A DNA stretch of 29,412 bases. It comes from Paramoeba atlantica (taxonomy: Eukaryota > Protista > Discosea). Of this stretch, positions 3,233-28,300 are shown piece by piece. The position numbers and the translations under genes are program-made. Positions within the stretch are counted from its first letter, which is position 1, and the number at the start of each line of letters is the position of its first letter. The stretch covers positions 1 through 29,412 of the forward strand of contig CDRNVI010000068.1 in NCBI GenBank assembly GCA_977017575.1, read 5' to 3'. The notes under the pieces were generated by a model. It was not told where the DNA came from, did not search any database, and worked only from the letters and a program-made list of their open reading frames with translations.

Positions 3233-4132
3233 ACGGAGCCCTTGGCAAAGCGAAGGAAGACAGAAAATCAGCAGCCGAAAGATCTTCTAATTACGGAGGA
3301 GTACGAGCCCTATACTGCACAACAGAGTACTCGAACAGGTAAAGTTCGAGGAGCACGTTTGCCACAGGAATACGAACTCGCGCAACTCGTTAAAGAAATT
3401 AAAGCAATTTCACTGGAGCCTTCATGGACCACAAACACACCTGCATGTGAGTGGGATGGAGTAGCTTGCGATGAAGAAGACGACGTAACCGAACTCAACT
3501 GGGCATATTACGATCTTTCCGGCGCCATGCACTGGGACTCTTTACCACAAACGCTCGAAAAGATTGATATCGCGAATAATAATCTCACGGGAGCACTGCT
3601 ATGTGACATCCTTCCGCCATGGCTTTTTTCTCTTTGGTTGTATAAAAATCGGTTGAGCGGGGCGCTGGATTTATCGCATCTACCTGATACCACAAACGAA
3701 CTTTGGTTGTCAGATAATAAGTTTGAGGGGAGCATCGATTTAACAAATCTTCCCGATTTACGCGCATTGCGAATTCAACGGAACAACTTATCGGGAGAAG
3801 TTTGTCTTAGTTGCTTACCAAACTCATTGAGAAATCTCAATTTAAGTGAAAACAAGTTTACTGGGCCACTTGATCTTCAAAATTTACCACCAAACTTGAT
3901 AGAGCTTGACTGTCATCAGAATTGTTTTGAAGGGCCAGTTTTGTTCGACCGTCTTCCCGGAACCTTGCACATATTATATCTTTCGGAATGTAAAGGACTT
4001 TATGGACAAATACCTAAATATAATACGTTTTTTATAAAGCACACGTGGCATGGAACAATGATTGAAATAAACGAGGCGGACGAAGAAATACACAGTAAAA
4101 ATAATACGATCATGGACAAATACCTAAAGTAA
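3233..4132 (+). CDS. Leucine-rich repeat protein (Perkinsela-type LRR family), no ATG at the apparent start
   Basis: About 8 LRRs of the form LPxxLxxLxLxxNxFxG, with N-cap PACEWDGVAC and GKVRGARLPQEY. In-frame TAG at 3203; AG acceptor at 3226-3227; in-frame ACG at 3233 and TTG at 3242. The first ATG falls inside the LRRs. Confidence 0.8.
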   Translation, partial: TEPLAKRRKTENQQPKDLLITEEYEPYTAQQSTRTGKVRGARLPQEYELAQLVKEIKAISLEPSWTTNTPACEWDGVACDEEDDVTELNWAYYDLSGAMHWDSLPQTLEKIDIANNNLTGALLCDILPPWLFSLWLYKNRLSGALDLSHLPDTTNELWLSDNKFEGSIDLTNLPDLRALRIQRNNLSGEVCLSCLPNSLRNLNLSENKFTGPLDLQNLPPNLIELDCHQNCFEGPVLFDRLPGTLHILYLSECKGLYGQIPKYNTFFIKHTWHGTMIEINEADEEIHSKNNTIMDKYLK

Positions 4133-12915: not shown

Positions 12916-13523
12916 GGAGAAAGGTCTCAACACGTTGGTGGGAATGTTGAAAGTGTGTTGCTTTATTCTCTCAAAAATTTATTTTCAAAATGGATTGGAT
13001 GTGCTTTGAAGCCTTTTTATACACGATTTGAAAATTATGTTCGCTACAGCCGTGTACAAAGGGTGTTTTTATGATGTGAGTATTATAACAATAACACACT
13101 TGAATACATAATGTTTTCTCTCGAACAAGGCTGTGTGAGTACGCTATATAAAATTTGAGGTTGTTGATGTCACTTGGGGTTCTTGAATGTGAACGTCAAT
13201 ATTACGATTTTTGAGTCGTTCAATATATTTTTATGAGCAGCGACATTGTACTTTCGCTGTTTGTTCCATAGCACATTACCATAAATATTTATGTGCTTCA
13301 TATCTTGAAACGAGCTCTGTACACAAGAATTATCCCTTCTACCAGAAGAAAATGATTTACAACTACAGTTTATTTTCCTTTCATGCGCCCAGCCTTAGCA
13401 TTTTCTTGATCCCTGCTCCTCTTCAGCGAAGCGAACGTTGTGCCTGACAAAGGCACTTGTACATAAAAAAGCCCTTATCAAAGTGATATTTTCTATTGCA
13501 CCATTGCTTTGAGCTGTTTCACT

Positions 13524-16500
13524 ATGCAGTTTTCTCCTCGACGTAGCGTGGCGCCTCGCCTCTCATCCTCGTTAAATCCCGAAGCCACGACGGATAGTGG
13601 CATTAGAACAACTCTCAATCACATGAAGAGTACTGCGCCCGATGCGCCAATTACTACAGGCGGGCCAAATTTAAGTACGGTATCCTCCAATCCACCTCGT
13701 ACACACACAACTGTACAATTCAGTAGACCTGCAAAACCGCAACTGACGTTTATCCAAAATTCGCACTCTGAAACGCACATACTTCTTCCAAATCCTACCA
13801 GCAGAGCTGTGTCGGATATAATGGTCCAAAACACGAATCCGAATCCTCCATTGCAAAATAGGAGCAGCGTTGACCTAACAAGCTCTCATGAATCTTCTAC
13901 CGCAGCAAATTCTTCAAGGGCTTTAAATACAACCTCATCGGAAAGAAATAGATTGCCACATCTGTATTCATCTCCTCCGAAATTCTGTAAAAGATGCGCA
14001 TCCTCGATTCAGTTTCTTACTTGTCGTAAAGGGGAGAACTGCGGAAAGCATTTCTGGGCGTGCTCCAAAGATGAGATTGGAATTCACACACAGCCGACCA
14101 ACACGTTTCGACGTCCTGTTTCGCATTATTTCGCTTGGCATGGAAATAACCCGTTGCCGGACCCCGCGTGGTTAGAAGAGCGCAGAGTCGAGTTTGAAGC
14201 CCTGAAAAAAGTAAAACATCGTGTTTCGAATCATCAAAACGGAAAAGGAGGTGAAACACAAGGCATCGAACAACCACTTTGTACCGTAATAATCCATATG
14301 GAAGCTGCTATGCTACTGCCCGAATTTCCTGATGCGTTGTGTGTGGCTTTTCCGAATAACGGAGCCCCCGGGGCTGTGATTGACGCGATCTTACGAAAAG
14401 AATTTGAAAACGAATTTCAAGTTCTTTATGAAAATGTGACACAAGATAGCGAGCACCCGAATGCTCTATCACAGTCAAATCCTCTGAGTGCACTCTCTGC
14501 CTTTTCCCAACGAAAACGACGTGATCTTGAGAAATTGAGAAAAAGAATGCAACCAGCGGGAGGGGTCTATTATTTTCCGCTATTACCCTATGACCACATT
14601 TGTCGGGCATTAGAGCAAATCCCGAAGACGGAGTGTACTCGTGTGGTGATCGGTTACCTCCCACAGCATGTGCGCGACGCAGCGGAGCGGATTTTACGTC
14701 TGGAGGCAATGCTCTCAGCAGAACAGGAGGCTGCAAAGGAAGTAGTGCTGAGTCAGAGAGATGGCGAAGGGTTTGAAACTGAGGTGCGAAATCGGAGGGA
14801 CGAAGAAGAAGAAGTCTTCAGCAGAAACCCCCAGCGGGGAGAAGATCAAAACCTCACCCCATATTTGCAGTTGGTGCAGGGACCACCAGCTACTTCGGCG
14901 GGGTGTGATGCGGACGGAAATACTTCCTGTACGTTAGAACCCGAAAATCAAAACCATATTACGGATCACAGCAGTATCCTGGCCTCCTTCGACAATTCGT
15001 TTGAAAACGATTCCAACCCGATCCCCTCCTCCCACGACCACCACCCCCTCGGCACCCCTCCCCCTCCCTCCTTTTCCCAATACGATGATGTTCTTCCCCC
15101 TCCCCCCTCTCCCGCCTCCTCTGTCCCCTTCAACATCCCCGACTCCCTTTACTCCCAACTGCTGCCGTATCAAAAAAAAGGCGTTCAATTTGGTATCGAG
15201 CGCCATGGCCGAATTCTTCTGGGGGATGAGATGGGGTTAGGCAAAACTCTCCAGGCCCTCGCGATTGCGCTACACTACAGTAAAGAGTGGCCACTCTTAG
15301 TCCTGTGCCCCGCCAGTTTGAAACAAGTCTGGCGCATGGAAATTAAACGATGGCTACCCGCCATAGGGGAAGATAAGGTGTTTGTCGCTCAACCCAAAAC
15401 AGGAAAATCCAACAAAGTAAAAAATACTTTTTCGAACACCAACGAATATCAGGTTTGCATTATCCCATACAGTTTAGTAAGTCCCTGGAAAGAGACTTTG
15501 CTGCAAAAACGTTTTCACGTGATTCTGTTGGACGAGTCGCATTATTTAAAAAATGTCAAAGCCCAACGTGTGGTCGCCACCCAAGAGATTTGTAAAGCGG
15601 CCAATCGTGTCGTGCTGCTCAGTGGGACCGCGATCCTGGCCCGTCCAATTGAGTTGTTCCCGCAAATCGATTTGTTATGTCCCGGGTGGATGAGTTATCA
15701 TAAATATGGTCAGCGGTATTGTGATCCGGATGCGGTGTGGCAACGGAATATGGTGGCGCAAAGTTCGAGAAATGGCTATCAAACGCCAGGAAGGAAAAAG
15801 CTTAATTCGTTTCGTCCCTATGAAGGGCACAGCTGTGTTGCCGGGTTGCATTGGTTTCTTCACCGTCAATTTTTCCTTCGTCGACGAAAATCTGACGTCT
15901 TGCCGCAGCTTCCCCCGAAACGACGGCAAGAAATTATGCTCGAGATTAGCGAAAAAGAAAAGGAGGGGATGCACGAACAACTGGAGGCGTTAAAAGAGGC
16001 CCAGGAACGGGAGAGAGGGGAGCTTGAGCTGACATGGGAGAATGGATCTTTTCAAGGCAATCCAAATGCCACAGCATTGTATTACACCACAAGTCTAGCG
16101 AAAGGACCTGCGGTTTGTGAATACCTGAGTTATTTACTTGATGGAGGATTACAGGAGATGACAAGCGTAGAGGAAGATTGCGCTACGCAAGGCATCGAAT
16201 ACAGCCCCGAGAACGCTGCAGAGAATCGGGTTTCCGAGGTACCGACGAAATTCCTGTTATTCGGGTATCATCGGGAAATGTTAAACCGTATCGAGGCCGT
16301 GGTCCAGGAGAAGGAGAAAGAGTGGGACCGACGTCGTGCGCAATCCCATGGAGCTCCAACGGAAGGAACCGAAAAACAAAAGTCCGGGGGTCGTAAGCGC
16401 ACATCGAATGGTGTTTCTGGGGAGGCTGTATACAGTATCCGAAATCTGCGTGATTTACCTGATCAAACCTCCGAGTCAGGAAGTATGTACTATAGTTCCA

Positions 16501-17606
16501 CTTCGAGTACTCCAGGTAATTTCGAGGATGCCACACAAGATCCTATTTTGGTTGGGCCAAATTATTCTGAAATTGGATCCTCTCTTTCCTACATTCGTAT
16601 TGACGGCGAGACCCCGATGGAGAGTCGATCCGTGTTGGTCGAAAAATTCCAAACAGACCCGAATTGTCGTGTGGCTATTTTATCCCTTGCTGCAGCTGCG
16701 ACAGGGCTGAATTTTACCGCCGCCAGTTTTGTCGTGTTCGCTGAACTGTTCTGGACCCCTGCGGTGATGCTGCAAGCTGAGGACCGGATTCACCGCATTG
16801 GTCAAAAAGCGTCCCATTGCACAATTCAGTATTTACTCGTACCCGGGACAATGGACGACGTGCTGTGGCCGATGTTAGTGAAAAAAGTGGCCGTTACGAG
16901 TTCCGTGTTAGACCAGAATCCACAGCCTGGGTTGGAGGTCCATGAGGAGAGTAGAGTCGTGCCACGAAATAGTATTTCGGAAGATGGACAGGAAGGATCT
17001 ACTATGCAAAATGAAAGTGAAAAAGGCGTTCCAAGTGGAGAAAAACAACAACTTGTGGCTTTGTCGGTTCAAAACGTTCCATCACGCCACATGGTTAGCT
17101 CTGGTCCCAATTCAGGATATTCGATGTTAAGGCAAAGCCCGGTGAAGGTTGTAGCCCCGAAAGAATCCTTGGATGAGTGGATTCGGAAGCGTTCGCTTCC
17201 AAACGCAGAACGTTTGGAAGACGAAGCGGACTCATCGAAAATGAACGTACTAAGTCATTCTTCTCGAAACGGCGATATGATCAAGCCCCGAGAACGTCTT
17301 GTCACACGTAATCTGAATGGCGCAGAGTCTTCTATACTCGTTGATCCGTTGAACACGTCAGCGAATAGAAAGGTCTCCGAGTCAATGCCGAATGACGTGC
17401 GAAACGAAGACGGAAATGCATTACATGATGCTCGTGAAAAACGTTTACGGCATCTTCATGCTTGTATGAGCGTTTCAGATGAGCCTCCCGAAAGGAGCGA
17501 GGAGATTCAAGCGCTCGAAATTGGGGAATCACCCAAAAGGGTACCTGTTCGCCATGAAAAAACGTGTGATGGCCTCGGTCTTTTGGACATGTTTATGTAT
17601 GAATGA
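13524..17606 (+). CDS. SMARCAL1: SMARCAL1/ZRANB3-like SNF2 annealing helicase with N-terminal GRF-type zinc finger
   Basis: Motifs GDEMGLGKT, LLDESH, LSGT, YIRIDGETP, ATGLNFTAA..ELFWTP and QAEDRIHRIGQ. CKRC...RKGENCGKHFWAC...HYFAW is GRF-like; YYFPLLPYDHI is HARP-like. First ATG at 13524 (the ORF track starts at TTG 13509). Confidence 0.85.
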   Translation: MQFSPRRSVAPRLSSSLNPEATTDSGIRTTLNHMKSTAPDAPITTGGPNLSTVSSNPPRTHTTVQFSRPAKPQLTFIQNSHSETHILLPNPTSRAVSDIMVQNTNPNPPLQNRSSVDLTSSHESSTAANSSRALNTTSSERNRLPHLYSSPPKFCKRCASSIQFLTCRKGENCGKHFWACSKDEIGIHTQPTNTFRRPVSHYFAWHGNNPLPDPAWLEERRVEFEALKKVKHRVSNHQNGKGGETQGIEQPLCTVIIHMEAAMLLPEFPDALCVAFPNNGAPGAVIDAILRKEFENEFQVLYENVTQDSEHPNALSQSNPLSALSAFSQRKRRDLEKLRKRMQPAGGVYYFPLLPYDHICRALEQIPKTECTRVVIGYLPQHVRDAAERILRLEAMLSAEQEAAKEVVLSQRDGEGFETEVRNRRDEEEEVFSRNPQRGEDQNLTPYLQLVQGPPATSAGCDADGNTSCTLEPENQNHITDHSSILASFDNSFENDSNPIPSSHDHHPLGTPPPPSFSQYDDVLPPPPSPASSVPFNIPDSLYSQLLPYQKKGVQFGIERHGRILLGDEMGLGKTLQALAIALHYSKEWPLLVLCPASLKQVWRMEIKRWLPAIGEDKVFVAQPKTGKSNKVKNTFSNTNEYQVCIIPYSLVSPWKETLLQKRFHVILLDESHYLKNVKAQRVVATQEICKAANRVVLLSGTAILARPIELFPQIDLLCPGWMSYHKYGQRYCDPDAVWQRNMVAQSSRNGYQTPGRKKLNSFRPYEGHSCVAGLHWFLHRQFFLRRRKSDVLPQLPPKRRQEIMLEISEKEKEGMHEQLEALKEAQERERGELELTWENGSFQGNPNATALYYTTSLAKGPAVCEYLSYLLDGGLQEMTSVEEDCATQGIEYSPENAAENRVSEVPTKFLLFGYHREMLNRIEAVVQEKEKEWDRRRAQSHGAPTEGTEKQKSGGRKRTSNGVSGEAVYSIRNLRDLPDQTSESGSMYYSSTSSTPGNFEDATQDPILVGPNYSEIGSSLSYIRIDGETPMESRSVLVEKFQTDPNCRVAILSLAAAATGLNFTAASFVVFAELFWTPAVMLQAEDRIHRIGQKASHCTIQYLLVPGTMDDVLWPMLVKKVAVTSSVLDQNPQPGLEVHEESRVVPRNSISEDGQEGSTMQNESEKGVPSGEKQQLVALSVQNVPSRHMVSSGPNSGYSMLRQSPVKVVAPKESLDEWIRKRSLPNAERLEDEADSSKMNVLSHSSRNGDMIKPRERLVTRNLNGAESSILVDPLNTSANRKVSESMPNDVRNEDGNALHDAREKRLRHLHACMSVSDEPPERSEEIQALEIGESPKRVPVRHEKTCDGLGLLDMFMYE

Positions 17607-18614
17607 GGAGCTAAGGCCAAATTTTCTGTAGAGTGGTGATTTTCCCTGTATATAGAATCAGCACATGATGGTATATTATTACTGGAAAGCTCAGTAATCG
17701 AGGGTAGAGCAGTAGTCATTGCTGTCTTCCTGGTCTTGAGGGAGGGAGGGAGTTCCTCCTTTATGTAAGCCCCCTGGGATTGTGGGGCGTTGGATTGTTC
17801 GCCCGTAGGTAGGTCTTGGAACGCCTAGCCGCACATCTGGCGAAGGGGTGCTTTGTCCTCTACGGTAACGAGGTAACGCTCGCGTCGCTCCTGTCTGGCG
17901 TCCTGATAGAGAAAAATCATCCCGAATCCGAAGGTGGCGAGAAAATCGGAAACCTGTAACACAACGTCTGTCGTGTTACAAAAAATAATAAGTTTTGTAT
18001 TTTCAGGAATCGTACGTAATAAAGCGTTGATATAAACAAACAGAGACGGTCAAGCCGCTTAAAGTAAAGGTCGTGACAACCTTGTCCCTCATGCTCTGCA
18101 GTTCAGCTTTCCGCTTCCGAACGGCACACGCGAGCCATCTCCTCATCCAAGGGAGGGCCCACGGGAGGTAGATCAGGCTCGAGAATGCGAGCGTGCGGGG
18201 GTAGTTCTACGCGAGGGGGGCCGTGCTCGTGACGTGTGAGTGCTCTCCAAACCGGGAAGGGCGCAGGTATTGTCACCGCTGGGCGGAGTATGTGTTTGTT
18301 GGAGAGCTCTGTCGTCGGGAGCTGTGCTCGACACATCCTGATCATGGGCGGTGAGCCTGGGGTTGAAAGGCCGGGCGAAAAAGTAGCACGGCCGGCTGCT
18401 GGGAGAGGTGAAGCTGGTCTCTCTCAAGGGAGGGCTCCACAAATGTCCGCTATTCGAGGGCCTTTGAGAATCGGGAGTGTCCCAAATACAGTTCCGGAAA
18501 CGGTGCCGGTTGTGGAGGAAAACTTTCGACACAACCGGTGGGAGGGGCGGATCCTTCCGCCCGTGGATCATATTTAGAGCCACACTAGGCGTGTGCACGA
18601 GTCCCTTAAGGGGG

Positions 18615-18643
18615 GTATCGTGTATCGAACCGATACACGATAC
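18615..18643. repeat. Perfect 13-bp hairpin
   Basis: GTATCGTGTATCG-AAC-CGATACACGATAC, 24 nt left of the 900-bp element. Confidence 0.85.
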
Positions 18644-18667
18644 ATAGTAGTCCTATTTGATGAACTA

Positions 18668-19568
18668 TTTCTTTTTTAGGCTCTTCGTTAAACGCGGTGG
18701 TTGTTTTCAACTTAGAAGTCACTCATGCTGCGCGCTTCGCGTTGAAAACTACCGCCGCGTTTAACGAAGAGCCTAAAAAAGAAAATTTAGCCTGGAAAAC
18801 GGAAAGATTATAGCCAAAAAATAGCCGAATTTCGGGTAAAAATGGGGTGAGTTTCGCGTATTTTTCCTCTCAGAGCACTAAATCCGACATTTGCTGGGAA
18901 ATCACTTGTAGGCATGAATGGAAGCCTACCGAACGTATTGAGTAGAGAATGCGACTCCAACCGTACCATTCTTTCGACACAAAAATGCCCCTTTAGGTCC
19001 GAAAAATACTTTTTCACCTTTTTTATTCCAAAATGGGTCATTTTGAGGGGCGCACCACGGTCACGCAAGTGATACCTTGCGAAAACAACTGCGGAGAAAG
19101 CTAGTGTAGGTCCCAAACTATCAAAATACAATAGGGGAAGCAATTTTGGAAAAATATTTTTTTTGTCATTTTTTTCGCCAAGTTGAAATTTTTTTCAAAT
19201 TTTTTTTCCGCAAAAATCCGAACTTGGCGGACCCGTCCTGCGGATACGCGGGGGGGTCACCCCCGGGTAGGGGGGTGGAAAATGCGCGCCAAGACTCCGG
19301 CTACCCTTTCTGCGGTTTTTTTTCGGAAACTAATTTTTTCGAAAAAATTTGCTCGACCATGAACCCCCCCCCCTGGACCCCCCCCTGGACCCCCCCCATG
19401 GACCCCCCATTTTTTTCAATTTTTTTTTTCAGTTTTGGTCCACCGGAGCCCCCTTTTATATTTTTTTCTTCTATTATATTACTGTGTTCCCCTTTATATT
19501 TTCACTGTTTTTGTTCACTTTTTTTTCAATAATCGAGGGTAGAGCGGTAGTTTTACAACCACCGTAAT
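18668..19568 (+). mobile_element. ~900-bp non-coding interspersed element, copy 1 (terminal foldback, G-run VNTR, terminal mini-hairpin)
   Basis: Reverse-complement match to 27305-28238 over its whole length. 30-bp perfect IR at 18668-18697/18755-18784. End hairpin GCGGTAGTT-TTAC-AACCACCG at 19544-19564. No TSD seen. Confidence 0.85.
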
Positions 19569-19574
19569 TAACTA

Positions 19575-19901
19575 CTATACCCCCCCTGCTTATGAGTTCC
19601 CCCAATTCTGGTACGGTTATGAGTTCCTTTTTCTAAGGCGAATGTTTTTGTACCAACTTTTCGCGAAACAATGTTTCTTCGAACAGAACAAAAATTCATA
19701 ATTTTCCCAACTACTGTACGTCAGGCTGCTGTATAGACTTGTACACTAAGCGAACAACCTTTTTAGTGCCAGTATCATTGTGAAGGAGAACCCGCGGGCC
19801 CTAATTTTCGCTTTTCTATGGCTCGATTTCAGGTCTGGTACGCTTATGAGTTCCTTTTTCTCAAAACGAGGGAACTCATAAGCAGGGGGGGGGGGGTATA
19901 G
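19575..19901. mobile_element. 327-bp MITE with TIRs and TA target-site duplication (Tc1/mariner-pogo type)
   Basis: TA|CTATA-C7-TGCTTATGAGTTCCC ... GGGAACTCATAAGCA-G12-TATAG|TA. Internal 27-bp direct repeats at 19608-19634 and 19835-19861 contain the TIR core TTATGAGTTCC. Confidence 0.85.
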
Positions 19902-20070
19902 TATTTGTTTGAGCGCCAGTAATGACGCTCAGAGCTCCCGTGTGCCCCGTCAGAAAAGAAGACATTGACTGATTCGAGCGATCTGACACGTCGTCCAACA
20001 TTAGCTTCTCCAGTGTTTCGGCTGTCACATAGGTATTTTCGTGTTTTAATTGAAACGGTGGAAGCGCGGC

Positions 20071-20563
20071 GCCCAGCTTAATTTAAATATTATCCTGCAA
20101 GAGAAAACGATTTAAATATTAATGTGCAAGCAGGTTAATATTTAAATTCCAGAATATTTTTCAAGGTATGATCCTTTTTTGCGAAACGAGGAGCTGCGGG
20201 TATGATCGCGCGTGATCTCGTTTTGGGTCTCACTTCACTTTGCATGTCATTGTCAAGATCCGAGATTGGACAAGATACACTTTCTTCTGTACTTTCGGAG
20301 CTTCCGGAGTCACTCTCAACACCGTTATCATCTGAAAGGGACTCACATCCCGATTTAATTTCCCAGGTAACGTCCGCGGATGACCGTTCAGTTGAATGTA
20401 TCTTGACACTTTCTTGAAAATGATCTACAAGAAAGGTTTCCGTAGGAAAAAAGCGATTTAAATATTAATCTGCATTTAAATATTAATGTCCAAACAGGTT
20501 AATATTTAAATAAAATTTTAATATTAAAGCGAATTAAAATATTAATCTGCATTTAATATATTT
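20071..20563. repeat. Two clusters of the AT motif ATTTAAATATTAAT, including a duplicated 38-bp hairpin
   Basis: ATTTAAATATTAA-(12 nt)-TTAATATTTAAAT at 20110-20147 and 20474-20511 (2 loop mismatches). Extra half-sites at 20071, 20456, 20516 and 20533. Confidence 0.85.
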
Positions 20564-20579
20564 ATCCGCACTCCGGGTT

Positions 20580-21670
20580 ACATAGGAGAGCCCAAACTCC
20601 CAGGCGCACGCCCACTAACTCCAAGGCGGTAAGTGAGCCAGGAGGGACTCACAGAAGAGCTTTGAGTAGTACACCGCATTAGGGCGGGTACCGACGGCAT
20701 TGCGTACCGCCTGCTTCACCCTCTGGAATAAGCCAAGTTGCAGCGCAGAAACCAATGTGCGTCAGACACTGGTGCAATGCTTCAGAGCATCTTCCCGTGT
20801 CCCCATCGCGGAGCAAAAGGCCGCTTGCATCTCTTTGAGCACGAGGCCCCCTTTGCGATGTTCTTCTCAGTGGGGGGATGAAGGTGGGGTATCTCGGGTG
20901 GTGAGGGCGTCCTTGTAAACATAGATATAAGCGGTCGCGTAGAGCCACAAGAACTGGCTGCGGGACCTCGCGGCTACAGAAATTGCCGCTTTTCAGTGCA
21001 TTCACGGCCCGAAGGATATCTTGTGCTCCGCGTTCTGTGTCCACTTCCTTCCTTTGAGGAAGCTTCTCCCAGCAAAGGTGTCGTAGACATGTACGTCTTT
21101 ATGCATTCAAGTGCGCTAGGAAGGAGTTGTACGAGCTTGTCCCGGAGCGACAATAACCAACTAAGTTCGTTATTTGGTTAGTTGGTTAAATTTTTCAGTG
21201 CATTGAATCCGATATTTGCACGTGGGAAATCACTCGGAGACCTTACTTTCCCATTTTTCCCCATTTCTTTTACTTTTAACCCCCCCATATTGAGTTTGTG
21301 TCCAGCTGCCGGAGAAAGTTGCTTTCACAGAAACGGTACCTTTATCGTTTGAGTGGCTTTCCTACCGTATCTTCCATGTTTGGTATCACTGCGATACTTT
21401 CACCGTTTGGCCGCAGGGAAACAGCAACCTTACTGGTATTAAAAGTCTCAAAAGACCTTTTTTTATTCAGTAACATATGGAAAAATATATTGCAGAAGGA
21501 GATAGTTTTAAAATTACCGAGACGAATCAAGTAACAAAGAAATGCTTCATATTTAAAGAAATACTTCGTATCATCCTTAGGATGATCGCAGTCAAAATAA
21601 GTAGAGTACTTCTTCTTAGAGTCTTGAAAAAAATCCAGAATTAAATCACCCAGAATGGTTTGCAGGTGTT
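20580..21670 (-). pseudogene. Unidentified degraded coding sequence(s)
   Basis: Long stop-poor, protein-like frames without ATG: ~108 codons at 21670-21345 (HLQTILGDLILDFFQDSKKKYSTYFDCDHP...) and QFLWLYATAYIYVYKDAL...LFCESLLAHLPPW at ~20960-20590. Confidence 0.3.
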
Positions 21671-22238: not shown

Positions 22239-24977
22239 ATGTCGGCCTTTGGAATTGACTTCGGTAACGCACATTGTCGTGTCGCTGTCACACGTCGCGG
22301 TGGTGTGGATGTTCTACTCAACGAAATCTCCAAGCGTGACAACGCCACCTATGTAAGCTTTAGCCCCACCGAACGTCACATCGGGGAGAAGGGTCTGGAT
22401 CATGCCATTCGAAACGCGAAAAACACCATTCACAATTTAAAAAGGTTTATGGGTATGAAAGGGGACTCCCCCATGCTGGTCTGCGAGCGGCAAAGGGTGT
22501 TGTTCGAAATTGAATCCGCCGAAGATGTAAACGTTTCGTTCGCGGTCTCCTACCAAAATGAGAAACTCAACTTCTCCCCGCCGCAAATTCTTGCCATGAT
22601 GCTCACGCAGCTTCGTGAGATCGTGGAGAAGGATAGCGTGGAGAGTGCACAGGTGATTTCCGGGAACGTTGGCTCGATGTCCGCGACCCAGGCTTCCGAT
22701 TGTGTCGTCAGCTGTCCGGCGTATTACACCATTCCTCAGCGCCGAGCGATTCTACAGTCCTGTACGATTGCCGGGCTGAACTGCATGGGGTTGCTCAATG
22801 AGACCACCGCCGCGGCGTTGGATTATGGTATTTTTAAATCAACGACGTTTCCAGAGGAAACAGTAACCCCGAAAGCCCCCGTGCAGTCAAAAGAGAATGG
22901 CGATGCATCGAAAAAGGAATCAGCTTCGGAATCTCCCGCTCCGTCCTTTCCCACATTAGGCCATCTTGTGTTTTTTGTCGATATTGGGCACAGCGCGACG
23001 ACAATTTCTTTGGTCTCTTTCTGGCGCTCGAAAATGAAAGTGATTCATACGGTCTATGATGTGGATCTCGGTACGCGAGAGATTGACTACCTGTTGCGGG
23101 ACCATTTCGTGCAGGAAATTCGGAACAAGTATAAGTTGGATGTGCTGGAGAGTGCCAAGGCAAAGACTCGATTGCTACATGCATGTGAGAGGCTGAAGAC
23201 CATGCTGTCCGCAAATAGTAGCGCTCCTCTCCACCTGGAGTGTTTACTGAACGATGTGGATGTAAGCTTCTCTGAGAACAAACGAGAACTGCTTGAGAAT
23301 TTGATTGAAGACCCCTTTCTTCAAAAGTTTACCACGTTGTGTGAAAGAGCTTTTCAAGGATTAACCCGCTTGGTAGAATCTTTGGGAGGCGAGGGTCTGC
23401 CCTCATACAGTGTTGAGCTTCTAGGCGGTGGTTCACGTATTCCAATTCTAAAATCGGTCTTGGAGAAGATCTTTAATATTGTTCCGAGCGCCACTCTCAA
23501 TGCCACAGAATCCGTTGCGAAAGGATGTGCCATCTTTGCCGCCATGCAATCTCCGAAATATAAGGTGCGAAATTACGACATTCAGGAGTCACTTCCGTGG
23601 GGGATTCAGATCGGGTACTACAGTGCGGCCATCGGTACTCCTGCAACTCTTCCCCCAAATCTTCTCTCTTCCCGATTTCAAGATATTAACAAAGTTTTAC
23701 TGCTGTTTAAACCTGGGGAAACCTACGCAAAGTCCCTCGACCTAACCTTTGAACGTGATGACAGTTTTCGTCTCTGTTTCGCGTACGAGCCGCAGAGCGC
23801 AGAAGAGATTTCACATCGATTAGGTCCCCATGCGGGTTATCTCGGCGAGGTGACCCTAGGGAAGCCCCCGATTGCGACCTTTCCTGAAAACGCCGAAAAT
23901 ATTTCTAGAACGAACGTCCGGGTTCGATTTCGGTACTCCCTGAAATATGGCACCCTTGAGGTAGACTCCGCGCACAGCTCTTCTAACTATGAGACGGAGG
24001 AAAAAATTATTCCCAAAGAAACAGTAAAAGAAAAAGAGAACGAAAAGAAACCGGAGTCCACAAATTCAGAGACAGCGGAGGACTCCAAACCAGAAGAAAT
24101 GGCAGCAAAACCTGAAGAAGTACCTCCTCCTACGCGAAAGGTTCGTCGAGAGTCCAAGAAATTACCTCTGACGCTGGATGCTCACTATACGACTTCTCTA
24201 AGTCCCGAAGAAGTGCTCAATGCTACCACCGGGGAGAAACGAATGCATGCCAGTGATCAACTCGTACAAGAAACAATCGAAGCTCGAAATACCCTCGAAA
24301 GTTACTTTTATGAAGTCAAACACAAAATCGTGGAGCCTTCCGGGCTGTGGCACGCCTTCACCTCTCCCGAAAACATCCAAAAATTTGAACAAGACTGCGC
24401 TACCAGTGCCTCCTGGCTGGAGTCTGAGCAAGGTGAGGAAGCCAGTAAAAAGGAAATTCTTGCACGACTCACGCCTTTGCAGGAAATCGCGAATGCGGCT
24501 TGCTCACGCTACCGAAATGCCGAGGAGATTCCCTATCGCGTGAGTTGTTTTGAAAAAGAAATGGAACGACTTGCGGCAGAGGTAAGAAAATTAAAGCCCG
24601 AGGCCGCAGGGGGGTGGCACACCGCAGAGGAGCTGGAAAAAGCTCATCAGAGTATTCAGGACGCGAATCAGTGGGTGGTAGAGACGCGAGGGAAGTATGA
24701 GTCCAGTGCTCGTTATCTCACACCCTTCTTTACGCCTGAGATGATGCAGAAGAAAGTGATTGAGGTGGAACAAGGTCTACGTCCGATCTTGAAAAAGGTC
24801 AAGCCACCTCCTCCGAAGCCAGAGACTCCGGAAACGAAGAAAGAGACAGAGAAAACAAACACAGAGAGCAAAGATGACATGCCGGAAGTGACGGAAGGGG
24901 AAGAAGAGACCTGTCAAGCTGAAGGAAACGTGTCCGAATGTGCGAAGACGACACCGAGTGCGATGGATATGGACTGA
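22239..24977 (+). CDS. HSP110: Hsp110/SSE-family Hsp70-like nucleotide exchange factor
   Basis: GIDFG, RRGGVDVLLNE.SKR, LLNETTAAALDYG, FVDIGHS, VELLGGGSRIP, TLNATESVAKGCA and EARNTLESY motifs; acidic C-terminus ending MDMD. Confidence 0.93.
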   Translation: MSAFGIDFGNAHCRVAVTRRGGVDVLLNEISKRDNATYVSFSPTERHIGEKGLDHAIRNAKNTIHNLKRFMGMKGDSPMLVCERQRVLFEIESAEDVNVSFAVSYQNEKLNFSPPQILAMMLTQLREIVEKDSVESAQVISGNVGSMSATQASDCVVSCPAYYTIPQRRAILQSCTIAGLNCMGLLNETTAAALDYGIFKSTTFPEETVTPKAPVQSKENGDASKKESASESPAPSFPTLGHLVFFVDIGHSATTISLVSFWRSKMKVIHTVYDVDLGTREIDYLLRDHFVQEIRNKYKLDVLESAKAKTRLLHACERLKTMLSANSSAPLHLECLLNDVDVSFSENKRELLENLIEDPFLQKFTTLCERAFQGLTRLVESLGGEGLPSYSVELLGGGSRIPILKSVLEKIFNIVPSATLNATESVAKGCAIFAAMQSPKYKVRNYDIQESLPWGIQIGYYSAAIGTPATLPPNLLSSRFQDINKVLLLFKPGETYAKSLDLTFERDDSFRLCFAYEPQSAEEISHRLGPHAGYLGEVTLGKPPIATFPENAENISRTNVRVRFRYSLKYGTLEVDSAHSSSNYETEEKIIPKETVKEKENEKKPESTNSETAEDSKPEEMAAKPEEVPPPTRKVRRESKKLPLTLDAHYTTSLSPEEVLNATTGEKRMHASDQLVQETIEARNTLESYFYEVKHKIVEPSGLWHAFTSPENIQKFEQDCATSASWLESEQGEEASKKEILARLTPLQEIANAACSRYRNAEEIPYRVSCFEKEMERLAAEVRKLKPEAAGGWHTAEELEKAHQSIQDANQWVVETRGKYESSARYLTPFFTPEMMQKKVIEVEQGLRPILKKVKPPPPKPETPETKKETEKTNTESKDDMPEVTEGEEETCQAEGNVSECAKTTPSAMDMD

Positions 24978-25416: not shown

Positions 25417-27161
25417 ATGCCAAACCCAACGCCCCAAGAGCTCAACCCCCCCACTACCCCATCCCAAACCGAAATTTCCACAAATCCACTCCGCAACCCT
25501 CCAAAAATGGATCTTCCCCCCTCTCCCCCACCCTCTTCTTCTTCTGTTTCTGCTTCCGAGGCCGCCAACACCGCCAAGGCCCTCGGCAACCAATGCTACC
25601 ACTCCGGGCACTACCCCGAAGCCCTCACGCACTACTCCCGCGCGATCCAACTCGATCCCACCCACCTAAGCGCCTATCTCAACCGCGCCCTCATGCACTT
25701 AAAGCTGGAGTGTCCCGGGGCCGCGCTCTCCGATGCGGAGGCCGCGCTGGCCTTAGATTACACTTCGGCCAAAGCGCACTACCGAAAAGGCTACGCCCAT
25801 TACCTGCTGGGGCATTACAAGAGCGCGCTGCCGGCGTTTGCCGCGGCGGTTCGTATAGAAACGCAAGAAGAAAATAAGAATAAGGATAATAAGAATAAGG
25901 ATAACCATAATAAGAATAAGGATAATAAGAATAAGGATAACCATAATAAGAATAAGGATAAGACGAATAAGAATAGGAATAGGAATAGGAATAAAGAAGC
26001 CTCGCAGATGTATGACCTCTGCGAAAAGGAACTGGCCCGGGCCAACTTCCTTAAAGCGATTGCGCTCCCCGAGCGTGCCCGCCCCTATGAGGTGGTGCAG
26101 TGGCAGGGGATTGAAATCGGGGAGGGGTCCACGGACTATACCGGTCCCCGATGGGAGCAGGAGGAGCCCATCCCCTCGAAAACGTTCCTCCACCAAATGA
26201 TGGAGGGCTTCTCCCTGGGCCGGTTGCTCCACAAAAGGTACGCGATCCGGATTTTACTCGAGGCCCGGAAACTTTTCGCGGCCTGTGAAAACATTCACCG
26301 GGTGGATCGACCCGTAGGGGAACACATTACGGTCTGCGGGGACATCCACGGGCAGTACTTTGATTTAGCCAACCTTTTTACCCTCAACGGGTTCCCCGAG
26401 GGGGTCTCCAACCCCTACCTGTTTAACGGGGACCTGGTGGATCGCGGGAGCTACGGCGTGGAGTGTCTGCTCACGCTGTGCGCGGTGAAGCTCCACGACC
26501 CGGCCGCGGTGTTCCTTAGCCGCGGCAACCATGAGGGGCTCAACCTCAACAAGGTCTATGGGTTCGAGGGGGAGGCGAAGGCGAAATACGGGGAGGGGTT
26601 CTACGAACTCGCCCACGATGTGTTTCGCGCCCTCCCGCTGGGGCATGTGTTAGGCACGAAAGTGTTTATCACCCACGGGGGGCTGTTCGCCCAGGATGGG
26701 GTCACGGTGGAGGGGTTGAACCAACTCAACCGCTGCCGGGATATCCCCGAGGAGGGGTTGATGTGTGAGATGCTGTGGAGTGACCCGCAGGAGGGGGAGG
26801 GGAGAGCGCCGAATAAACGGGGCGTAGGGGTGGCGTTTGGCCCGGATGTCACCGATGGCTTTTTAAAACACAACGGGTTCAATTTGTTGATTCGTTCCCA
26901 TGAGGTGAAACCGGAGGGGTATGTGGTGGAGCACGGGGGGAAGTGTGTGACGGTGTTCAGTGCGCCGAATTATTGCGACCAACTGGGCAATAAAGGGGCG
27001 TTTATTCGCATGACGCGGGGTGAGAAGAGGAGGGGGGAGAAGACCGGGGCAGAGGAAGGGGAAGAAGAGGAACGGAGTACTGGATTCCCGCGTTTACGAG
27101 CTTTACGCACGTGCCGCATCCGGGGGTTAAAGCGATGCAATATTCTCCGTATATGATATAG
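25417..27161 (+). CDS. PPP5C: Protein phosphatase 5 (3 TPRs + PPP catalytic domain); C-terminus frameshifted relative to the called ORF
   Basis: TPRs (KALGNQCY, YLNRA, KAHYRKG) and GDIHG, GDLVDRG, RGNHE, SAPNY motifs. The conserved tail FTSFTHVPHPGVKAMQY is encoded in a different frame, open 27024-27161. Confidence 0.92.
25873..25995 (+). repeat. In-frame 123-bp AT-rich minisatellite encoding (NKNKD)n/NR in PP5 TPR3
   Basis: AATAAGAATAAGGAT units; a 36-bp higher-order unit occurs twice; 41 codons. Confidence 0.95.
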
Positions 27162-27304: not shown

Positions 27305-28238
27305 ATTGCGGTGGTTGTAAAACTACCGCTCTACACTCGATTATTGAAAAAAAAGTGAACAAAACAGTGAAAATATAAAGAGGAACACAGTAATATAATA
27401 GAAGAAAAAAATATAAAAGGGGGCTCCGGTGGTCAAAACTGAAAAAAAAATTTGAAAAAAATGGGGGGTCCATGGGGGGGGTCCAGGGGGGGGTCCAGGG
27501 GGGGGGTCCAGGGGGGGGGTCCAGGGGGGGGGTCCAGGGGGGGGGGCATGGTCGATCAAATTTTTCGAAAAAATTAGTTTTCGAAAAAAACCGCAGAAAG
27601 GGTAGCCGGGGTCTTGGCGCGCATTTTCCACCCCCTACCCGGGGGTGACCCCCCGCGTATCCGCAGGACGGGTCCGCCAAGTTCGGATTTTTTCGGAAAA
27701 TTTTTTCGAAAAAAATTCAACTTGGCGAAAAAAATGACAAAAAAAATATTTTTCCAAAATCGTTTCCCCTATTGTATTTTGATAGTTTGGGACCTACACT
27801 AGCTTTCTACGCAGTTGTTTTCGCAAGGTATCACTTCTTCGAACTGTGGTGCGCCCCTCAAAATGACCCACTTTTGACTAAAAAAGGTGAAAAAGTATTT
27901 TTCGGACCTAAAGGGGCATTTTTGTGTCGAAAGAATGGTATGGTTGGAGTCGTATTCTCTACCCAATACGTTCGGTAGGCTTTCATTCATGCCTGCGAGT
28001 GATTTCCCACGCGCAAATGTCGGATTTAGTGCTCTGAGAGCAAAAATATGCGAAAATGACCCCATTTGTACCCGAAATTCGGCTATTTTTGGCTATAATC
28101 TTTCCGTTTTCCAGGCTAAATTTTCTTTTTTAGGCTCTTCGTTAAACGCGGCGGTAGTTTTCAACGCGAAGCGCGCAGCATGAGTGACTTCTAAGTTGAA
28201 AGCAACCACCGCGTTTAACGAAGAGCCTAAAAAAGAAA
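27305..28238 (-). mobile_element. ~930-bp non-coding interspersed element, copy 2 (inverted)
   Basis: Reverse complement of 18668-19568. Foldback at 28119-28241; hairpin at 27308-27329; six G-run/TCCA units versus three in copy 1. Confidence 0.85.
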
Positions 28239-28300
28239 ATTATAATTACGATATACCTTTAGATTTGAGATATTCCTTTTATTGCTTCAGTATTCAGCTT

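Follow-up and report, generated by a model that had tools for sequence, protein, structure and literature searches.

What kind of mobile DNA ends in a long foldback on one side and, on the other, in a short sequence that equals the inner arms of that foldback joined together with the loop left out? This question is raised by a stretch of about 900 bp within the window, which is the whole 29,412-nt piece of DNA that we analysed. An earlier note, made from the letters alone, placed the element at 18668-19568, pointed to Helentron/HINE elements and to the DIRS group as possible relatives, and regarded it as the best candidate for an undescribed mobile system because it seemed to fit neither. We arrive at a different answer. 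With a probability of roughly 0.9, positions 18668-19567 are a non-autonomous element of the HLE2 group (Helitron2, endonuclease-free) that is mobilised in trans by the 2965-aa RepHel protein of a 12.9-kb master element, where the role of this protein in mobilisation is suggested by the ends that both elements share. The features of the window are as follows.

18668..19567, minus strand: probable non-autonomous Helitron2-type element, one full copy of 900 bp (at least 50 full-length relatives, an empty-site paralog, termini shared with the 12.9-kb RepHel elements)
18668..18784, minus strand: 3'-terminal long hairpin, presumed termination signal (RTS), with 44-nt arms and a 29-nt loop (folding)
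18694..18704, minus strand: 3' ATIR (minus-strand sequence ACAACCACCGC; when reverse-complemented, identical to the 5' ATIR at 19555-19565)
18745..18755, minus strand: partner of the 3' ATIR in the ascending arm, minus-strand sequence GCGGTAGTTTT (read from the sequence; conserved in copies)
19544..19567, minus strand: 5' terminus, composed of TT, (G)CGGTGGTTGT (5' ATIR) and AAAACTACCGC, a 9-bp mini-hairpin (same start in three autonomous copies)
18667, no strand: host base next to the long hairpin; on the minus strand, T of the A^T target (empty site and flank statistics)
19568, no strand: host base next to the mini-hairpin; on the minus strand, A of the A^T target (empty site and flank statistics)
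27306..28239, plus strand: second, more diverged copy of the family, 934 bp, 90.7% identity in a BLAST search of the element against the window, with the 5'-end motif at 27309-27329
13509-17606, plus strand: SNF2-family helicase gene, 1365 aa, the largest ORF of the window and not a retroelement
22239-24977: ORF of an HSP70-like protein
25417-27156: PP5-type phosphatase gene
665-1441 and 3242-4132: ORFs of LRR proteins

Ends and insertion site of the element

The long foldback reported by the earlier note is real. Its arms at 18668-18711 and 18741-18784 are 44 nt each and 95% complementary, enclosing a 29-nt loop, and the resulting 117-nt hairpin is predicted to fold as single-stranded DNA with -50.5 kcal/mol (z = -12), a stability that none of 200 shuffled sequences reached; the value is about -50 on either strand. 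The inner parts of the arms contain the pieces GCGGTGGTTGT (18694-18704) and AAAACTACCGC (18745-18755). The far end at 19544-19565, when reverse-complemented, is the exact fusion of these two pieces (11 + 11 nt), and the resulting 22-mer folds into a 9-bp mini-hairpin of its own (-5.9 kcal/mol, z = -4.5), which is kept in the copies and in the master elements. The observation that the far end equals the rejoined inner arms and is itself a small hairpin thus holds to the nucleotide. In most copies the first half of the mini-hairpin agrees with the inner arm in 10 of 11 positions, with 11 of 11 in the window copy, where a C-to-T change gives the 5' terminus ACGG, not GCGG.

These rejoined arms are a pair of asymmetric terminal inverted repeats (ATIRs). 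The 5' ATIR, GCGGTGGTTG(T), begins 2 nt in from the 5' end, after TT. The 3' ATIR forms part of the long hairpin's descending arm; its distance from the 3' end is 26 nt in the window copy and 26 to 30 nt among the copies, varying with the length of the tail. The ascending arm contains the partner piece GCGGTAGTTTT, to which the second half of the 5' mini-hairpin is complementary. The 5' repeat being a small palindrome in its own right, inverting it at the 3' end likewise gives a hairpin, which there is split by a 37-nt insert and enclosed in an outer stem of 26-30 bp. The complementarity from end to end (10-11 + 11 nt, exact) is higher than that inside either hairpin (9/11). Full-length copies with these ends number at least 50, which excludes a chance origin of this architecture.

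The 900-bp unit is non-coding, in agreement with the earlier note. The only persistent reading frame lies on the pyrimidine-rich strand and has no Pfam match. In most copies it is open for about 130-149 aa, and we rejected it as an artefact of the pyrimidine strand, its translation being of low complexity and rich in F and P.

The boundaries are defined by a paralogous empty site (L053, C54:425364-428577), the one true empty site in the data set (n=1), which lacks exactly positions 18668-19567. It aligns with the window at 17000-17882, 18223-18669, and 19567-21026 with 91-93% identity. This empty site stems from a segmental duplication of about 92% identity that covers window positions 17000-21026, namely, the 3' end of the SNF2-family gene and the intergenic region downstream of it. 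The empty-site sequence reads ...GATGAACTA-T-TAACTACTATACC..., with ...GAACTA[T]TAACTAC... around the insertion point, and the filled/empty pair has no target site duplication (TSD), a single T being ambiguous. The absence of a TSD noticed earlier is hereby supported, and so is the start of the element at 18668; its end moves from 19568 to 19567, 1 nt shorter, when the insertion is placed between A and T.

Four further insertions lie inside short tandem repeats and hence act as their own empty sites (L012, L016, L028, and L030). Together with L053, they give five informative cases, all of which fit the A^T placement, one of them with a 3-nt filler; a T^T placement fits at most two of the five, and at a single site the placement is ambiguous by 1-2 nt. 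The flank logo, compiled in the transposase sense from 43 to 47 independent ends, shows an A at position -1, the base before TTGCGG, in 41/43, a T at position +1, the first base after the hairpin, in 41/47, and a T at position +2 in 29/47. Insertion is precise and free of TSDs, with a host A on the 5' side and a host T, often TT, on the 3' side. The flanks of the element are A/T-rich, and the flank statistics confirm what had been noticed from the window copy. A MITE-like element of about 335 bp (19570-19906), with 32-nt TIRs (AACTACTATACCCCCCCTGCTTATGAGTTCCC and its complement) and internal direct repeats, abuts the Helitron copy; it is older than the Helitron insertion, as it is also present at the empty-site paralog.

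A dispersed family and its autonomous partner

Searching the 45.7-Mb assembly from which the window derives yields more than 50 full-length matches with 90-96% identity to the window copy, which start and end at identical positions and have unrelated flanks. The earlier note had considered that only the two copies of the window might exist, as part of a local inverted duplication, which is refuted by at least 50 full-length copies in the genome. The 22-mer of the mini-hairpin end has 697 genome matches with at most one mismatch, and a 27-mer from the hairpin arm has 901, some hairpins being counted twice; both reversed control sequences have 0. The 34 copies that we extracted are 891-941 bp long with a mean pairwise identity of 97%. 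The family is high-copy, young, and dispersed, with some 700 5'-end motifs and at most about 900 hairpins in the genome, and its roughly 700-900 non-coding passengers occupy in the order of 1-2% of the genome. The second copy in the window (27306-28239) has the opposite orientation and lies directly 3' of the PP5-like phosphatase gene. A further non-coding subfamily, about 740 bp long (L021:38-775, L022, and L026), combines the same termini with an unrelated body. A search for the exact 22-mer in a metagenome collection gave no match.

Some copies form head-to-tail arrays of 4-7 units (C21:734304-739625, C41:240253-243771, and a further one on C91), in which the hairpin end is fused directly to the mini-hairpin end of the next unit with the junction GAAAA|TTGCGG. 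On the sense strand, the joined ends form two abutting hairpins, and an A^TT site falls at the last base pairs of the long stem. The junction, seen in genomic arrays, is compatible with a circular intermediate but falls short of proving it. The arrays could also stem from repeated insertion at the A^TT of a resident 5' boundary and not from rolling-circle read-through. A different tandem array with a period of 3420 bp (L046, C71:39500-46900) is built from units in which the first ~700 bp of the element, containing the hairpin end, are fused to about 2.7 kb; the latter part has two minus-strand ORFs of 326 aa (no assignment) and 273 aa (weak match to the endonuclease/exonuclease/phosphatase domain).

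The earlier note proposed to look for long copies with the same ends that carry Rep and helicase genes, and this search was successful. The Helitron_like_N domain has 29 matches in the genome, and three elements of 12.9 kb, on C43, C41, and C52, are 99.6-99.7% identical over about 10 kb. These masters open with ATTGCGGTGG... after three different 5' flanks, their shared 5' start being ATTGCGGTGGTTGTAAAACTACCGC, and each stops within the same long hairpin, in its right arm, again next to a flank of its own. The C52 locus was also considered as a separate Helitron family, which was rejected, as it is another master of family 1. An 8.6-kb long copy (L041, C3:23500-33400) was rejected as a candidate master; it is an ordinary copy in which a LINE (APE-RT-RNase H) is nested. 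This non-LTR retrotransposon comprises a 740-aa ORF1 and a 1535-aa ORF for endonuclease, RT, and RNase H.

The C43 master carries an uninterrupted RepHel ORF of 2965 aa (L047:213-9110, corresponding to C43:152912-161809). Its Pfam matches are DUF6570 (PF20209, residues 1350-1475, 43.5 bits with the cut-off at 24.3), Helitron_like_N (76 bits), and PIF1 (88 bits), and the motifs of both activities are intact, namely, HUH (HFH at 1816), YxxKYxxK (YLIKYMSK at 2031), and Walker A (GGPGTGKS at 2539). DUF6570 is described as a marker of HLE2 in the HELIANO paper (PMC11417382), and we assign the protein to HLE2 by domain content, not by tree. In the PDB, the helicase part matches PIF1 helicases and Helraiser, the latter with E = 2e-7 for the helicase part only. 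About 1300 N-terminal residues have no family assignment and include 267-bp tandem repeats that differ in number between the masters. A second ORF of 259 aa with an RRM lies downstream of the RepHel ORF, and neither of the two ORFs has a Pfam match to Exo_endo_phos. An exact look-up of the RepHel protein in a public protein collection gave no match.

The RepHel gene is read in the sense of the window minus strand. Therefore, the long hairpin, which the earlier note took for the left, that is, the 5' end, is the 3' terminator, and the 5' end is formed by the small hairpin. Of the long hairpins in the master, only the one at the 3' terminus is complete; two internal units keep the left arm only and fold with -9 and -16 kcal/mol, whereas the terminal one reaches -40. 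Joining the first 5' unit of the master to this complete hairpin gives the 900-bp element, as would be expected of a deletion derivative. The lead towards Helentron/HINE elements was right in kind, as we are dealing with a non-autonomous element of the HLE2 group, but the master has no endonuclease and is not a Helentron in the strict sense.

Transposition model and alternative explanations

By analogy with Helraiser and the Helitron2 literature, we suggest the following course of transposition. The Rep domain would nick the sense strand at A^TTGCGG, 2 nt ahead of the 5' mini-hairpin, and the PIF1-type helicase would peel off the strand in the 5' to 3' direction until the 117-nt hairpin halts the unwinding. 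The second tyrosine may then cut at the foot of the hairpin, in the frayed A-rich outer arm, and a cut at this position would explain the 3' tails of 5-12 nt. Joining of the ends would lead to a single-stranded circle with the two hairpins abutting around A^TT, which could insert at a host A^T(T).

The 3' end is indeed ragged. Among 47 ends, the tail after GAGCC is 12 nt long (TAAAAAAGAAAA) in 22, 11 nt in 11, 5-10 nt in 13, and 0 nt in 1, and it differs even between masters that are 99.6% identical. We favour imprecise cutting in the frayed A·T outer stem in combination with the A^TT target as the cause, because the tails are only ever shorter than 12 nt and the bases that follow are the host T or TT. 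One of the 47 ends (L006, C29:645959-646105) differs in that the outer arm of the hairpin is prolonged by 24 nt, which are the reverse complement of the element's own internal sequence. This case leaves room for a fold-back step, rare as it is among the 47 ends; self-templated extension as the general cause of the ragged end was rejected, with one truly extended end in 47.

The alternative that survives best also starts from a Helitron2-type element but assigns it non-standard ends: during transposition the 3' hairpin would be a free, self-priming end that is either shortened by trimming or lengthened by fold-back synthesis, and the end point would be set by docking of the 5' end into this hairpin in its opened form. 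The variable tails of near-identical copies, masters included, and the 24-nt extension copied from the opposite strand of the palindrome speak for it, as does the complementarity between the ends, which exceeds that within the hairpins; pairing of the ATIRs as an end-point signal was already proposed by Bao and Jurka (PMC3627910). However, nearly all apparent extensions past GAAAA are the host TT of the A^TT target, and the remaining tails are only shorter, for which imprecise cleavage in a frayed A·T stem suffices. The one real self-templated extension may be a later replication error at a palindrome, and the minimum-energy fold of the joined ends consists of two separate hairpins, not of a docked junction. 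The repeats vary too little within family 1 for a covariation analysis. Altogether, we consider this alternative improbable, at odds of somewhat worse than one in eight; if it were true, the end processing would be a natural read-out of HLE2 termination.

Far less probable is a cut-and-paste MITE or foldback element of a DDE transposase, for which the hairpin would be a degenerate TIR structure. A short, non-coding, high-copy unit at A/T-rich insertion sites, with an inverted repeat (pair I6) connecting both ends, would suit such an element. The earlier note had itself named an ordinary MITE with clear TSDs and symmetric TIRs as the case that would speak against its reading, but the empty site is without a TSD, the ends are asymmetric (a 117-nt hairpin on one side and a 22-nt mini-hairpin on the other), and the only long elements with these ends encode an HUH Rep/PIF1 helicase and no DDE enzyme.

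A derivative of a tyrosine recombinase (YR) retroelement of the DIRS/VIPER type would explain the complementary ends as an ICR-like junction, and kinetoplastids do carry VIPER (PMC12278014). We regard this origin as very unlikely. These ends are not associated with any gene for RT, RNase H, or YR; the partner encodes RepHel and the small RRM protein, and the sole RT that we found belongs to the nested LINE. The DIRS/ICR analogy of the earlier note is likewise not supported, as the neighbouring large ORF is the SNF2 helicase; the YR retroelement that the note placed in the window was not located. Just as implausible is a satellite-like unit that is scattered by recombination without being a transposon, as suggested by the arrays of 4-7 units on C21, C41, and C91, given that most copies are solitary with identical sharp ends and unrelated flanks and that one filled/empty pair is precise.

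Host lineage and comparison with known systems

The non-autonomous Helitron2 reading places the element in an unexpected host. KMP-11, a kinetoplastid marker, is found with 151 bits on two contigs (C2 and C12) that both also carry the repeat, which identifies the host as a kinetoplastid. Published surveys report kinetoplastids as a group without Helitron transposases. In a survey of 57 genomes, trypanosomatids are without class II elements, the only one cited being Merlin from Bodo and Perkinsela (PMC12278014); a Diplonema paper mentions Helitron-like ORFs in passing. We found no report of Helitrons in bodonids in the literature.

The genome also contains a second RepHel lineage (L054/L055, C99:9000-26999, minus strand) with a 2130-aa ORF that is 24% identical to the first. 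Its sharp 5' boundary, ...AATAATT|TATTGAGGGAGATACGGAGTATC, is again a small hairpin and is common to at least 30 copies of a unit of about 1.55 kb elsewhere in the genome; we looked for a clear 3' end of this family and did not find one. The genome carries at least two deeply divergent Helitron-like lineages. An intact gene for a 2965-aa transposase and about 700-900 young passengers change the picture of the kinetoplastid mobilome, which also matters when genuine PIF1 paralogs are counted in kinetoplastids. Furthermore, the clear architecture, with a complete giant hairpin confined to the true 3' end, half-hairpins in the interior of the master, and a 5' mini-hairpin mirroring the inner stem, makes the family a convenient system for studying end recognition and termination of Helitron2.

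The element is of a known kind, being notable mainly for its oversized end hairpin and its host lineage. The claim of an undescribed mobile system does not hold, as the architecture matches the definition of Helitron2, which requires two end hairpins, ATIRs of 8-15 bp, and a 5' T, with the 5' ATIR 0-2 bp from the 5' end within the 5' hairpin and the 3' ATIR about 20-30 bp from the 3' end (PMC3627910). Mite and Culex Helentrons are likewise known to have palindromic subterminal repeats, and the number of terminal Ts is variable in Helentrons and HINEs (PMC4067079, Thomas et al.).

The closest relatives are the Helitron2 elements of Bao and Jurka (2013), with Helitron-1_CRe and the non-autonomous Helitron-1N1/1N2_CRe, and FoHeli1/2 of Fusarium oxysporum. 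Both systems have a RepHel protein without an endonuclease and hairpins at both ends. They also share an ATIR, here of 10-11 nt, whose 5' copy lies 2 nt from the end in the 5' hairpin and whose 3' copy lies 26-30 nt from the 3' end, a 5' T, the absence of a TSD, plentiful short non-autonomous derivatives with 95-98% identity, and occasional tandem copies. In contrast, the 3' hairpin described here has arms of 44-47 bp (117 nt) and is not a short stem-loop, and the 3' ATIR lies inside its descending arm, not just upstream of a short hairpin. The target is A^T(T) and not TTTT^T/C or T^T, although published HLE2 families also deviate from T^T, as FoHeli1/2 insert at TNAT^A (PMC5148889). The 3' end is ragged, the RepHel protein is very long (2965 aa), and the host is, by its marker gene, a kinetoplastid.

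Helentrons and the HINE/DINE-1 elements (Thomas et al. 2014) share subterminal inverted repeats that can be palindromic, as in mite and Culex, a 3' stem-loop, the absence of a TSD, a variable number of terminal bases, tandem copies, and short deletion derivatives with the ends of the master. Unlike Helentrons, the master described here does not have an apurinic-endonuclease domain, and thus it is not a Helentron in the strict sense; in addition, the family lacks a central microsatellite core, does not insert within TT, and has a far larger hairpin.

With canonical Helitrons (HLE1, e.g., Helraiser), the family has in common an HUH/Y2 Rep fused to a PIF1-like helicase, a 3' hairpin terminator, insertion between a host A and T, the absence of a TSD, and circle-like junctions of joined ends. 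However, the 5'-TC and 3'-CTRR termini of HLE1 are absent, the ends being 5'-TTGCGG and ...GAAA(A)-3', and a hairpin that reaches the terminus stands in place of the 16-20-nt hairpin located about 11 bp from the 3' end, whereas ATIRs, a 5' hairpin, and the HLE2 marker DUF6570 are present. Lastly, the proto-Helentron of Phytophthora and the "HLE2-reverse" elements (FoHeli3-5) likewise combine an HLE2-type protein with an atypical end architecture, and the proto-Helentron also inserts between A and T (PMC4067079), but in the family described here the long stem-loop is found at the 3' end relative to the RepHel gene.
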